A stretch of 64,000 nt of DNA, taken from Setoptus koraiensis (Eukaryota > Animalia > Arthropoda). This document shows positions 50,588 through 62,123 of this stretch, piece by piece. The stretch spans positions 7,812,001-7,876,000 of the forward strand of contig CM106586.1 in NCBI GenBank assembly GCA_048013815.1, given 5' to 3'. The first letter of the stretch is position 1; each line of letters opens with the position of its first letter. Below the pieces are notes generated by a model. It had not been told where the DNA came from. It did no database searches and saw only the letters and a list, made by a program, of their open reading frames with translations. The position numbers were made by a program, and so were the translations under genes.

Positions 50588-50669
50588 TGTTCAAATTTGG
50601 CGCTCACAAAAGGATCGACGAGGGTGCGCAAGATGCCTGTTTGTCGGAAGCGGCATGAGACGAACGCTG
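50588..50669 (+). promoter_or_regulatory. Shared ~85-bp element, copy 1 (CEBPZ/eIF2gamma divergent promoter)
   Basis: 23-nt identity GTTCAAATTTGGCGCTCACAAAA with 62039-62061, plus continuing similarity GAGGGTGCGCAA..ATGCYTGTTT..CGGAAGCRGCATGARACGAACGCTG. Confidence 0.75.
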
Positions 50670-50914
50670 CACGGTGTTTAACAAAAATCTTCTCTCTCTT
50701 CATCAATGACCATATGTGGGATTCACGATCAGGCACTATTACAACAGGAATAACGATAAAATGTCCCCAATCAATATTTTTTAATTCAATTTATCGCCTA
50801 AAATATTCTAGCAACTACAATAAACAAGTGTTTGGATCTGAATAAGCCTGTCGCGCTCGCAGTTGGCATAAATTATAATTATATTTGCTGGAATTTGATA
50901 GAAACAATAACAGG

Positions 50915-52526
50915 ATGCCGCCTCCAACTAATGTAAGTAACATCCTCACAAGTTCCAGGAGTTAGTGGCTTACTTTATCGAATCACATCAAGATTCTCGC
51001 TAGATCCCAACTCTAGCGACCGACTAATCAGACAACTTACTAACCTCTCATGATTTTTATCTCGCCCCGCTCGTCCCTCAGCTGACGCCGCTGTCTAAAG
51101 AGGTTATAAGCAAACAAGCAACTATAAATATAGGAACAATTGGACATGTGGCACATGGTAAATCTACTGTTGTCAAAGCTATTAGTGGTGTGCAGACTGT
51201 TAGATTTAAGAATGAATTGGAACGTAATATTACTATTAAATTGGGATACGCCAACGCCAAAATATACAAATGTGACAATGATGCCTGTCCCAGGCCCGGT
51301 TGTTATACATCCGCTGGCAGTAACAAAGAAGACGAATTCCCTTGCCACAGACCGGGCTGTAGTGGACGCTTCAAACTGCAACGACACGTATCATTTGTTG
51401 ACTGTCCTGGTCACGACATTCTCATGGCCACTATGTTGAATGGAGCAGCTGTCATGGATGCCGCTCTTTTATTGATAGCCGCCAACGAACCTTGCCCACA
51501 ACCCCAGACATCAGAGCATCTAGCCGCTGTTGAAATCATGCAGCTTAAGCATATACTAATTCTACAAAACAAAATTGATTTAGTCAAAGAATCACAGGCT
51601 AAAGAGCAATTTGTGCAAATCCAAAAATTCATCGATGGTACTGTAGCTCAAGGTAGTCCAGTTATTCCAATCTCAGCACAATTGAAATATAACATTGATG
51701 TTATTTGCGAGTATATATGCACGAAGATACCTGTCCCAAAACGTGACTTCGAAACTCCTCCGCGACTCATCAGTAAGTCAAACCAATCAAGATGACACAT
51801 CCTTACTATTATGATACCAATGTTCCCCCAGTCTCGAAAACTAATCCTTTACTTTTCGTCCTACTTTTTGCAGTCATTCGTTCCTTCGATGTCAACAAGC
51901 CAGGTTGTGAGGTCGAAGATATCAAGGGTGGTGTCATTGGTGGTTCCATATCGACGGGACTTCTCAAAGAAGGTATGGAAATTGAAGTTAGACCAGGTCT
52001 AATAGAAAAAGACGAAGACGGTAAAGTTATATGCTGTCCCATATTTTCAAGAATAGTATCCCTGAATGCCGATATAAATGAGCTCGGTTTCGCCGTACCT
52101 GGTGGTCTAATTGGTGTTGGTACAAAAATAGATCCTATGTGGACAAGAGCCGATCGTATGGTTGGTCAAGTATTAGGTACTGTGGGTTCGTTACCAGATA
52201 TTCACACAGAACTAGAGATAACTTATTATTTATTGAGGAGGCTCTTAGGAGTCCGAACGGAAGGCGACAAGAAGGGTGCAAAAGTTCAAAGACTCTCTAA
52301 GGGTGAGATGCTTATGCTCAACGTTGGTTCTTTATCTACAGGTGGTAAAGTAACCGCTGTCAAAGTTGATTTGGCCAAAATATCATTGTCCACCCCAGTA
52401 TGCGTAGAGATTGGTGAAAAGATAGCATTAAGCAGGAGAGTTGATCGTCATTGGCGTCTCATCGGATGGGGCCAAATTAGAAGAGGTACAATCATCGAGC
52501 CAACTATTCGCGAAAATCGGCCATGA
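50915..52526 (+). CDS. EIF2S3: Translation initiation factor eIF2 gamma. Exons 50915-50932, 51082-51772, 51874-52526
   Basis: [44 protein letters not shown]; consensus GT-AG introns in frame. Confidence 0.96.
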
Positions 52527-53476
52527 GATACAGCTCGATCGACATGTCCGCATGTCCAAGTTGCCTTGTTTAATAACTTACAAATTCACCTATAGCTTAA
52601 ATAAAAAATAAATTAAGTAACTTTATCATGCTTCCATATCTTAAATAAGATAGCAATCAAGAGAGTTGGAGAGCATCACTTAAGTAGATCTATGAGGATC
52701 AATTAAAAAATAATATGAGTCATTGCATAACCTTCCGACTGTCACATAAAAATCAATTCTGTTGGGCCGAAAAGAGAGAACAATAGCCGGCATTTGCACT
52801 CAATAGAAATCTTTAATCAGATGGTGTACATCTTATTCAATGAGCACTTTGATTGAAAATGAATGATATCAGTAACCTAAGCTTCTCTAATCGATATCAA
52901 CTTGATCGGCCCTCCCTATTGCGATCGCGACCACTGGATTGGGTCAAATTTCCTATTTTGAACGTTGCCATAGTGGGTCAGAGATAACTATTTGTGTGTG
53001 GAATCTGAAATGAAAGTTCCGTTGTGTGATCTATTCAATATTTATATTTTACTAGCAACTTATGACAGCAAAGCACTAAGTATCATATGGGATATCAAAC
53101 CTTTTAAATGTTGGAAGATACCGGAAATAGAAATGTACTCTAGTTGATTTAGCAGTATTAACGCAGCAGCTGCTCACGTTAATTAGTTCAATCGTATTCC
53201 GAACTAATAGATTAAATAGTACCTCACTCAATCAACTACTTATACCGTGGACCACCTAAAATATATATAAAATACTCAAGAGGTCAGCCGTAAGGATTGG
53301 GATACAAGGATGTTTCAGAAATTGGTTCAATACTAACTTACATCGACATACCTGTCTAACTAGTTCAATCATTAAACAAACATTCAATCGATCGTTAACG
53401 TTTCTCTAGGCAACTTTAAAAGTGAGATAGAGAAGTGGGGAGGAGAAAACACAATATAACTCAATACTGATGAGTT

Positions 53477-53998
53477 TTAGGGAAATAATTGTTGTGGCTT
53501 ATTCTGTTGATGAGGCATCAAAAGAGCTTTTTGTGATTGCTGCTGCTGTCGTTTTTGCTTCTCGTTGGAATCAATGTACCAGACAGTTATGGCAAATCTG
53601 ATTCGTTGTGCTGGTTGAACTTCGTGCGGATTCCTGCGGTCTGACCAAAAAAATAGAACTCTATCAAATAGTGGCGCTATGTTTGCCACTTCGTCGATTC
53701 CCACGGGAAATATTCTTAGTAGGCCACCATCTCGCGAAACATTCCAGTCTTTGTTTAGATAATATATCGATGTTATACAACGCCCGTCTCCGTTAGGATT
53801 ATCTATATGCTTAATGTAATGGGTCCCATTTCCTGGATAACAAGCAATCATAGCTTTTGTTCGTTGATTGATTATGTGCCTATCGAATTCGCCATTATTG
53901 CCCGACATCCTGTTACAATATATTATAACAGAATCGAGAGCTTGAATGAGCAATTCAATCTGTTTGCAACCTTCTTCGGTACCATCCACCCAGATCAT
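53477..53998 (-). CDS. EGLN1: HIF prolyl 4-hydroxylase (EGLN/PHD/Hph) catalytic core; 5' end missing or decayed
   Basis: [49 protein letters not shown] with intact HxD...H and 2OG-binding Arg; in-frame stop 5 codons upstream of the ATG. Confidence 0.8.
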
Positions 53999-54733
53999 AC
54001 TATCTCGGCGTCAGATAGTGAAATCTACTTTCGCCGTTGTGTTGTTCACAACTAATTATATTACTAGTTTCTATCCCCTGATAATTTAACCTCCATTGAT
54101 CAAAGTTAAGAAAGATCTCTTCGCAGTAGGCAGCTCAGCTTATCTCTTCCTGATAGAAGTTTAATTTAATTGCTGAACGAAATTAACGACCATCATGCAG
54201 TAAGTGTCGCTCTGTAGATCTATAGAGTTTAGTAGTCTGCTCATAACTCATTGAGTTTTCCTCGAAAATAAATACTTGAATTCCTTGTATCTTGATCAAT
54301 GAAGATCATCGTGAACATGATTCCGATTGATTTTAAAAGCACAAATTGAGATACTTCCCATCAACACCCCCCACCTGATCGAGTTATCTCATATCTACTA
54401 ACAAATAAAGACTGTAGATGTCATATATTCTCCGAGTTGGCCTCATCTAAGGGCCCCCAAATGAGTTCAATTTTCGCGCGCAACAAGTGAACATAGAAAT
54501 TCTTTGGTAGAATGTTGGCTATGTGCGAAAAAGAAGTCTTTTGTTTGAACGAGTTGCTCGTACCCGATCATCGAGTTTCGAAGTTCGAACAGCAGCATAT
54601 GTGTAACCATGGTGACACATTCTTTCCAAAGAATCTTGCATGATTATTTCTCATCGATGCATCTATGTATCTGAACAACAATTTGGTCGATCCGATTTGA
54701 AGCCTGACTAACCAGGAGCATATACTGTTCGAA

Positions 54734-61100: not shown

Positions 61101-61333
61101 TCGATTGGTGTCTAGTCGTCGTGGCATATTAATAGTCAGGCTTATGAAAAAAATAATGAAAAACCCAATATACCTTCGGCGATGGTCTCTTCGATAGATA
61201 GCTGATAACTACCCACAGTCACACATTTGCAACTGAGGTTTTGGACACTTGCACATCTTGAAGTATTTTCCTTGAACAATTCTGGTCTTTGATCTGGGTT
61301 ATGATTGACGAGGGCTCGTAGGACTCGCTTCAT
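58173..61333 (-). CDS. AAK1: Numb-associated kinase (AAK1/BMP2K/Nak). Exons 61333-61174, 61061-60943, 60848-60743, 60621-59302, 59197-58173
   Basis: [67 protein letters not shown]; all four GT-AG junctions are phase compatible. Confidence 0.92.
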
Positions 61334-61609
61334 AATTGTCGATATGAGTGAGAGCCTCTATAAGTTCGAAGATAATAATTAGTAATAACATTCGATCTTT
61401 TTATTCTATTTAATATAAACTCTTACATAATCACAATTTTGATAATCATAGTATCAGATCCAAAGAACAGAGAATACCTACATGTAGAAGAGTAGTTGTT
61501 GTCTATTGTATCTTGATGGCATTCAGTAAGACAACAAAGACAGGTGATTTTGATCACAGATTACAGGGTGACGCAAAAGTCTCGACGCCATTCGCTTGCA
61601 TTACATTTT

Positions 61610-61622
61610 CACCAGAGGGCGT
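61610..61622 (+). promoter_or_regulatory. CTCF-like site CACCAGAGGGCGT
   Basis: Same 11-nt core as 50555. Confidence 0.35.
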
Positions 61623-62037
61623 GCAGCTTCTGAAGCTATGAGAGTTGTGTAAGAGAGTGATCGCTCGCTCCGTGCTAGTCTGTTTCCCTTCGCATGAAAC
61701 ACGATTAAAAACTTGCTAAAAGTTTTGTAATAAAACTTTCACCATAAAATTTCAAACCAACCAACCACTGACTAACCAAATATTATCCTGAAGCGATATG
61801 GTTGGCATGTTTCTAATTAACTATGCCTTTGCTTGAGAGCAAAAGGTTCCCCATATCAGTGAAAAATATCGGCGTTGGGGGTAGTTCTGTATGGTGAGGA
61901 ATTTTTAAGAACAAGGTATTGTTGTAAAAATGTATTGTTCAGCAAGTTGTGGTCGATGTGATGTGTGTATGTCGCACAGATTCTATACCAAGTGGTACCC
62001 GGTGGGTATAGAGAAAATGCCCCGCTGAAATTTTTCT

Positions 62038-62123
62038 CGTTCAAATTTGGCGCTCACAAAATAATCGAATCGAGAGGGTGCGCAAAATGCTTGTTTAGCG
62101 GAAGCAGCATGAAACGAACGCTG
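62038..62123 (+). promoter_or_regulatory. Shared ~85-bp element, copy 2 (NAK/RpL18a divergent promoter)
   Basis: Colinear with 50588-50669 at roughly 80% identity by eye. Confidence 0.75.

Follow-up and report, generated by a model that had tools for sequence, protein, structure and literature searches.

In animals, the coordination of the ~80 ribosomal-protein genes with their partners in translation is understood only in part, and yeast, flies and mammals differ in this respect. Mammalian ribosomal-protein promoters have upstream GABP/ETS sites and an intron directly after the leader or ATG (PMC554972). In the CDE/CHR promoters of E2F-DP and LIN54/MuvB (DREAM, dREAM, DRM), the LIN54 consensus is TTYRAA and a CDE-4 bp-CHR arrangement is canonical (PMC4974476); worm and fly are reported to have hybrid E2F/LIN-54 motifs (PMC5683655, PMC3093354). 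A third phenomenon, promoter or first-exon capture by local segmental duplication ('re-heading'), copies promoter, leader, ATG and first codons onto unrelated genes.

All three have a likeness in an ~85-bp stretch of the gall mite Setoptus koraiensis genome, present twice in the window, i.e. the whole 64,000-nucleotide piece of DNA that was analysed (contig CM106586.1). We consider it probable (roughly 0.7), from the pattern of sites and their conservation, that this stretch is promoter DNA, a compact and ordered cluster of transcription-factor sites selected upstream of protein-synthesis genes. Such a module, defined by its sequence and common to ribosomal-protein, initiation-factor, tRNA-synthetase and chaperonin genes, would link growth genes to an E2F/CHR site of the sort usually associated with the cell cycle.

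Copies of the module and the genes that carry them

The two copies in the window, A (50588-50669) and B (62038-62123), both on the plus strand, are homologous and colinear with 85% identity (E 9e-20 in a whole-genome search), and include an exact run of 23 nt (50589-50611 = 62039-62061), bearing out the preliminary description of two stretches in the same orientation ahead of the eIF2gamma and RpL18a start codons. They score 83 bits (E 4e-22) and 79.7 bits (E 5e-21), respectively, against the covariance-model profile R2, the E-values of such models being rough. Copy A ends 245 bp before the eIF2gamma ATG (50915) and copy B 220 bp before that of RpL18a (62343). The genes were identified through Pfam and PDB, spliced genes being searched one exon at a time rather than as a joined protein model: eIF2gamma by the Pfam domains GTP_EFTU and eIF2_C and by human eIF2 subunit 3 in PDB (E 6e-123), RpL18a by Pfam Ribosomal_L18A. 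Exon 1 of eIF2gamma (MPPPTN, 50915-50932, plus strand) is followed by GTAAGT, and exon 2 starts at 51082, with the alignment beginning at human residue 28; exon 1 of RpL18a (MPSNA, 62343-62357, plus strand) is likewise followed by GTAAGT. The description of both promoters as divergent holds for copy A, which shares its intergenic region with the first exon of a CBF/Mak21-family ribosome biogenesis gene (50339-50362, minus strand, ATG at 50362, ~225 bp away), and loosely for copy B, where the ATG of a kinase gene is ~700 bp off. The sequence GATTCACGA, reported to follow both copies, is indeed present, but 59 bp past A and 6 bp past B in positions that do not align, and is probably a coincidence.

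Beyond the window, BLAST-type searches of the genome, whether queried by the element or by full 400-bp front ends, retrieved only A, B and a third copy, C, which precedes RpS27 on the other chromosome. Genome-wide profile searches added diverged copies D and E, 5' of CCT4 and AsnRS, and the more diverged F and G, 5' of RpL5 and RpS24, with rough E-values of 0.006 (modestly significant) and 0.7 (not significant alone); RpL12 and RpS10 have part of the block only. Three cytosolic ribosomal-protein genes, RpL5, RpL12 and RpS24, are among the best 15 non-self profile matches. Among the other weak matches inspected (E 0.3-10), several proved to be just the generic 14-mer discussed below and two lie inside tropomyosin coding sequence, and these were rejected. 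This gives five close and two distant copies in the 48.7-Mb genome, on both chromosomes, each 250-380 bp 5' of the start codon of a gene in the ribosomal-protein, translation or chaperonin class (247-379 bp from module start to ATG in nine genes), and the search of all 48.7 Mb found no copies outside promoters. The putative carrier set would thus comprise at least eIF2gamma, RpL18a, RpS27, CCT4, AsnRS, RpL5 and RpS24, and in part RpL12 and RpS10.

In all seven members the blocks stand in the same order with similar spacing. At position 0 a LIN54-type CHR (TTYRAA; consensus PMC4974476) is fused to an E2F/CDE core, TTTGGCGC, the composite reading TTCAAATTTGGCGC in copy A (50590-50603, plus strand) with its counterpart in copy B at 62040-62053 (plus strand). 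A TGCGCA box follows at +28 to +39 from the CHR start in 7/7 members (50625-50630 and 62079-62084, plus strand), then an ETS-type core (C/A)GGAAG at +45 to +60, and GC(A/G)TGA 7 nt after the start of the ETS core (11 nt in RpL5). The last two, CGGAAG and GCATGA, at 50645-50658 in copy A and 62099-62112 in copy B (plus strand), are invariant in A-E. The CHR hexamer is TTCAAA, TTTGAA or TTCGAA, all fitting TTYRAA, in A-E, G, RpL12 and RpS10, and TTTGAT in F. The 3' half (CGGAAG to GCATGA) is private to the module family: its exact extended pattern occurs only in the five close copies, and with one mismatch allowed the number of matches equals that of the control. The motifs TTTGGCGC, TTYRAA and CGGAAG, and the stem sequences discussed below, are found as they were first written down.

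The first 14 nt of the module (TTYRAATYTKGCGC), the composite of LIN54-CHR and E2F sites, are far more widespread: the genome has 150 such sites, compared with 4 of a reversed control, a ~37-fold over-representation. The contexts of these sites are unique and include many unrelated promoters, a Myb gene among them, and a gene lies downstream in 13/16 informative cases (p 0.02). This agrees with the E2F and CHR sites proposed in the preliminary description, the 14-mer fitting the LIN54 consensus beside an E2F/CDE core (PMC4974476). None of the ~26 generic CHR-E2F sites examined adjoins a ribosomal-protein gene, and therefore the 14-mer alone is not specific for translation genes. A pattern scan of metagenomes for the composite gave 0 matches. 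As in CDE/CHR promoters, TTYRAA has a GCGC core on the opposite strand ~4 nt upstream and the motif shows strong enrichment at promoters; the minus strand reads GCGC, 4 nt (e.g. CAAA), TTYRAA, a spacing fixed by the search pattern in all 150 genomic matches, and whether the register agrees with that of the mammalian CDE varies with where the 5-mer is delimited. Unlike the described elements, the mite motif runs CHR then E2F relative to the downstream gene, and the genes behind it belong to the ribosomal-protein, translation, chaperonin and proteasome classes as well as to the cell cycle.

The genome encodes cognate factors for the CHR, E2F and ETS sites, namely one open frame with two TCR/CXC domains (LIN54-like), four E2F_TDP genes and ~7 ETS genes. 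We infer that the module would be bound by E2F/DP together with a LIN54-like MuvB protein, by an ETS protein and by at least one further factor, all jointly setting the output of the start site, the E2F, LIN54 and ETS assignments being putative ones by motif resemblance only. The parts are of known kinds, none of them extraordinary alone, and their proposed function is a prediction from sequence. To our knowledge, the ribosomal-protein genes of flies and mammals are not commonly viewed as E2F/DREAM targets, which counts against the reading we favour. The combination of E2F/CHR, TGCGCA and GCATGA belongs to neither the described fly set of promoter factors (M1BP, DREF, TRF2; PMC5737516) nor the mammalian one (GABP, Sp1, YY1).

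Duplicated gene front ends

The copies are part of whole duplicated gene front ends, a membership that had been overlooked. Rather than forming an isolated ~85-bp element, as first supposed, A, B and C are homologous over ~360-400 bp at 65-70% identity, through promoter, leader and a first exon of 5-6 codons to just past the splice donor. Front end A (50580-50944, plus strand) comprises the module, a leader with two secondary conserved blocks, the first exon and the splice donor, and is colinear with B and C; front end B (62030-62369, plus strand) has a ~40-bp deletion relative to the other two.

D and E are colinear over 689 bp at 75% identity, including ~41 codons, so that residues 1-41 of AsnRS are 64% identical to residues 1-44 of CCT4 (E 1e-13). 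Residues 14-44 of CCT4 in turn align with residues 23-53 of the mammalian CCT-delta chain (PDB), and because the common N-terminus aligns with this chaperonin chain the direction of copying would be from CCT4 to AsnRS. The alignments thus indicate that AsnRS has taken the front end of CCT4, ~41 codons native to CCT4 included.

The close copies therefore did not arise separately. Given the ~360 bp common to A, B and C and the ~690 bp common to D and E, duplication of whole front ends onto other genes accounts for at least part of the module's spread, a visible route that is eased by the habit of ribosomal-protein genes of placing an intron between the leader with its ATG and the body of the coding sequence.

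Conservation, start site and alternative readings

Within these otherwise decayed duplicates the module is the conservation peak. Among A, B and C it is 80-87% identical, against 25-55% and indels in the leader stretches that separate the conserved blocks; between D and E it is 83-93% identical against ~70-77% in the surroundings. Between the two subfamilies the module is the sole alignable part. Of the three explanations originally offered for the similarity, a co-regulating promoter module for ribosome and translation genes is consequently the best fit, as all copies are at such promoters and the block is where conservation peaks. The clear duplication of whole front ends does lend itself to a reading in which the similarity is their neutral residue and the 85-bp block itself is functionless, but we regard this as unlikely: the flanking leader of the very same duplicates has decayed to 25-55% while the block is still 80-93% identical, the block alone is common to A/B/C, D/E, RpL5 and RpS24, and its carriers all belong to one functional class.

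The position of the promoter module relative to the start site bears on a further alternative. The only pyrimidine run of at least 8 nt between module and ATG in copy A lies at 50688-50701 (plus strand) and is a candidate TCT/TOP-type start (consensus YYCTTTYY, PMC4102762), as is TCTTTCTTT at 62152-62160 (plus strand) in copy B. In A, B, C, RpL12 and RpS10 a single run of this length follows the CHR at a distance of 37-112 bp; that of E adjoins the ATG, and D, F and G are without any near the module. In A, B and C the start site is probably in this tract, 15-30 bp downstream of the module, although the module could instead lie inside the transcribed leader. The former placement resembles ribosomal-protein promoters of mammals and Drosophila, the mite ETS core of A, B and C standing ~45 bp 5' of the pyrimidine tract and the first exon ending at or near the ATG (the ATG alone in RpL5 and RpS24, five codons in RpS27 and RpL18a; PMC554972, PMC4102762). 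Compared with TOP mRNAs, the implied mite leaders of 210-300 nt would be long. A 5'UTR intron between pyrimidine tract and ATG finds no support; A and C have possible splice sites there, in a segment that is deleted in B.

It is quite unlikely that the block is functional as a transcript, whether as a structured small RNA or as a regulatory 5' leader element of translation mRNAs. Mammalian CHR/CDE sites are at or near start sites (PMC4974476), by analogy with which most of the block could be 3' of +1, and 17 nt of the copy A block show 82% complementarity to the region of the start codon; this complementarity, though, is missing in B and C. The covarying hairpin reported earlier proves to depend on one C-G/T-A difference between A and B, with C having a C.A mismatch in the stem and D and E breaking it. 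Indeed, the covariation score of the three-stem structure over five copies was reached by 121/500 shuffles, and RNAalifold on seven copies gave -3.75 kcal/mol with a covariation term of 0. Single-sequence folding of the plus strand was no better than that of shuffled sequences (z 0 to +1.2); of six folds the sole one to beat shuffles was the minus strand of copy C (z -2.5), and the structures differ among copies. A scan of the whole window against Rfam gave no match, and conservation tracks short blocks with variable spacers, as protein-binding DNA would. The structured small RNA put forward in the preliminary description accordingly finds no support in folding, covariation or Rfam.

That a small mobile element (MITE/SINE) inserted into promoters and was domesticated to give the block, as was also proposed originally, is very unlikely despite several dispersed copies on both chromosomes, as these number five close and two distant in 48.7 Mb with 0 outside promoters, neither the block, whose boundaries are too diffuse to define target-site duplications, nor the 360-bp unit is flanked by terminal inverted repeats, and colinearity into leader, start codon and coding sequence fits segmental duplication over transposition.

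A possible regulon built by re-heading

The promoter-module reading admits a broader and more tentative suggestion, one we hold to be possible rather than likely: that gall mites have rebuilt the control of protein-synthesis genes around a module of E2F/LIN54, ETS and further-factor sites, in a regulon that may grow by copying promoter, leader and start codon together. If true, a regulon would here have been assembled in nature through promoter duplication and not through de novo evolution of sites. Codons in intron 1 of eIF2gamma that resemble an older first-exon remnant coincide with a TACTAAC branch-point motif, and this candidate was dropped. As in other re-heading, promoter, leader, ATG and first codons have been copied onto unrelated genes, and the mite family adds a multi-gene example. 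In contrast to a single donor-recipient pair, it consists of three plus two close copies with distant members on both chromosomes, and its members have in common one functional class and one apparently selected core.

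Copies of the module and the genes that carry them

The ~85-bp element that the preliminary description placed upstream of two translation genes is real. Its copies at 50588-50669 (copy A) and 62038-62123 (copy B) of the window are colinear and 85% identical with an exact run of 23 nt, copy B being recovered at E 9e-20 when the whole genome (48.7 Mb, in two contigs, C1 and C2) was searched. As was proposed, the ATGs at 50915 (245 bp past the end of copy A) and 62343 (220 bp past copy B) open the genes for eIF2gamma (Pfam GTP_EFTU and eIF2_C; PDB human eIF2 subunit 3, E 6e-123) and RpL18a (Pfam Ribosomal_L18A), and every motif listed for the element is found in the sequence. 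The shared GATTCACGA does occur after both copies, but at different distances and in unaligned positions. The promoters had also been called divergent, which holds for copy A, whose intergenic region is shared with a minus-strand ribosome-biogenesis gene of the CBF/Mak21 family (ATG 50362) that has a pyrimidine tract of its own; at copy B the divergent neighbour, a protein kinase gene, has its ATG ~700 bp away. Between the CBF/Mak21 and eIF2gamma genes, 75 bp upstream of the module, is a CACGTG E-box (Myc/Max type) at 50510-50515.

The A/B homology exceeds the 85 bp, extending through the leader and a first exon of six (MPPPTN, eIF2gamma) or five codons (MPSNA, RpL18a) to the GTAAGTA donor, ~360 bp in total; spliced genes were searched one exon at a time. 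Short introns and GTAAGT donors, like the protein matches, are as expected for an arthropod. The same colinear front end is present at a third close copy, C (C1:10940314-10940393, minus strand), upstream of RpS27 (Pfam Ribosomal_S27e; first exon of five codons, MSSNT). A sequence-only covariance model of A-C identifies a diverged pair on C1, separated by 2.2 kb: D (E 1e-7) precedes a CCT4/TCP-1 delta gene that has no introns, and E (E 3e-4) precedes the gene that follows it, for asparaginyl-tRNA synthetase (AsnRS). A model of these five adds a sixth, F, upstream of RpL5 (E 0.006) and a weaker G upstream of RpS24 (E 0.7) with its blocks ordered as in the other members, these E-values being rough owing to a shortened calibration. 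In the sample of ribosomal-protein promoters read, RpL12 and RpS10 have the 14-mer of the module's 5' end plus parts of the remainder. The exact extended 3' pattern is limited in the genome to A-E, and allowing one mismatch yields no excess (4 matches, 4 in the control).

Module anatomy, candidate start and rival readings

Counted from the first base of the CHR (TTYRAA) hexamer, all seven members A-G have TTYRAA-TT-TGGCGC at position 0 (F and G each off by one base), TGCGCA at +28 to +39 and GGAAG at +45 to +60, extended to CGGAAG in six, with GC(A/G)TGA following 7 nt past the GGAAG start (11 nt in F). The spacers vary in length and sequence, and in nine genes the module starts 247-379 bp ahead of the ATG. 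Among A, B and C the module is 80-87% identical, and the first exon and two shorter leader blocks are also conserved, while identity in the stretches between falls to 25-55% with indels. Between D and E the module is 83-93% identical against ~70-77% nearby, and across the two subfamilies the module is the only alignable part. This pattern points to old duplications in which the module has been held by selection. The module is most plausibly a cis-regulatory promoter element under selection, shared by a set of protein-synthesis genes.

Between module and ATG, A, B, C, RpL12 and RpS10 have a single pyrimidine run of at least 8 nt, located 37-112 bp past the CHR. In A-C this tract opens with a conserved TCTTC, which in B precedes the longer run by 9 nt; the first C of the TCTTC is 44-45 nt past the first base of CGGAAG. 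In these three copies the tract is similar to the TCT/TOP initiator described for ribosomal-protein genes (PMC4102762, PMC554972), although the leaders implied in the mite, 210-300 nt, are long by comparison. If transcription starts in the tract, the module would be proximal promoter, at ~-10 to -100. The tract adjoins the ATG in copy E and is absent from D, F and G.

The alternative that the element is a structured RNA drew on a hairpin described as covarying. This hairpin does not survive comparison: its stem is broken in D and E and contains a C.A mismatch in copy C. The three proposed stems are paired in 83.8% of cells over five copies against 81.9% in shuffles, with a double change in one pair only and a covariation score equalled in 121 of 500 shuffles; the stems appear because the GCGC boxes are palindromic. 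None of the copies gives a plus-strand fold better than those of its shuffles, minimum-energy structures are unlike between copies, RNAalifold run on seven copies yields -3.75 kcal/mol and a covariation term of 0, and Rfam has no match anywhere in the window, so this reading is not supported. Nor is a mobile element, as neither inverted repeats flanking the module nor, in genome searches, copies outside promoters were found. A 17-nt stretch of copy A (50640-50656) shows 82% complementarity to the start-codon region of eIF2gamma (50915-50931), probably by chance, and this is not conserved in B or C. Near-identical tropomyosin-like coding stretches on opposite strands 2.6 kb apart (C2:3204754 and C2:3207349) are an inverted duplicate that surfaced only as chance profile matches.

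Duplication of whole front ends

Entire gene front ends were duplicated, and at least part of the spread of the promoter module came about in this way. From ~-530 to +130 around the ATG, D and E align colinearly across 689 bp (75% identity), and residues 1-41 of AsnRS match CCT4 residues 1-44 at 64% identity (E 1e-13). Because residues 14-44 of CCT4 can be aligned to positions 23-53 of a mammalian CCT-delta chain (PDB), the shared stretch is native to CCT4, and AsnRS has therefore taken over a copy of the CCT4 front end. AsnRS (frame at local 5239-6438 of C1:10894000-10903000) begins with the CCT4-derived peptide. It presumably has no counterpart of the long N-terminal extension found in metazoan cytoplasmic AsnRS, the human protein included. 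The mite eIF2gamma has six residues ahead of the point aligning with human residue 28, where the human protein has 27, which fits a replaced front end without proving one. Both re-headed proteins, eIF2gamma (51082 onward) and AsnRS, are N-terminally short.

The CCT4 and AsnRS front ends contain a second conservation peak of ~60 bp, 93-97% identical and so more conserved than the module, between -475 and -416 relative to each ATG (local ~2600-2660 and ~4764-4823 of C1:10894000-10903000). The AsnRS copy lies directly past the CCT4 stop codon; the peak may serve as a 3'-end signal or as some other control element.

The 14-mer as a general motif

The 14-mer is a general motif: the genome contains 150 occurrences of the pattern TTYRAATYTKGCGC against four of the pattern read backwards, and the 30 sites read have unique contexts unrelated to each other. 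By eye, we take its neighbours to include Myb, proteasome alpha-5, Rpn5, Rheb and stomatin-like 2, among others, and SNF5 and TBL1 to adjoin weak profile matches with this 14-mer or one almost identical to it. Of 16 informative loci, 13 have the larger open frame downstream of the motif (p 0.02). Read on the minus strand, the mite motif consists of GCGC followed, after four bases, by TTYRAA. Biochemical work defines TTYRAA as the LIN54 (MuvB) site, and in many DREAM targets an E2F/CDE site precedes it by 4 bp (PMC4974476); motifs that combine E2F and LIN-54 sites are known from C. elegans and Drosophila (PMC5683655, PMC3093354). The first part of the module (E2F plus CHR) is a known kind of site; what is new is the combination of sites and the genes carrying them. 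From the motifs we infer E2F, LIN54 and ETS as the candidate factors; encoded in the genome are one protein carrying two CXC/TCR domains, four E2F_TDP matches and ~7 ETS domains.

Two 14-mers lie 7 bp apart in opposite orientation in one promoter (C1:799809-799843). The sites at C1:7569 and C1:20579 adjoin what we take by eye to be two stomatin-like (band-7) genes, 13 kb apart in opposite orientation; near-identical sequence downstream of both sites suggests a recent inverted gene duplication. Elsewhere in the window, 28 kb (14000-42000) at 50-63% G+C between flanks of 37-41% hold no open frame above 300 aa and look like a long non-coding GC-rich island, with many CA/GT microsatellites and 14-bp tandem arrays at 30986-31093 and 33941-34057.
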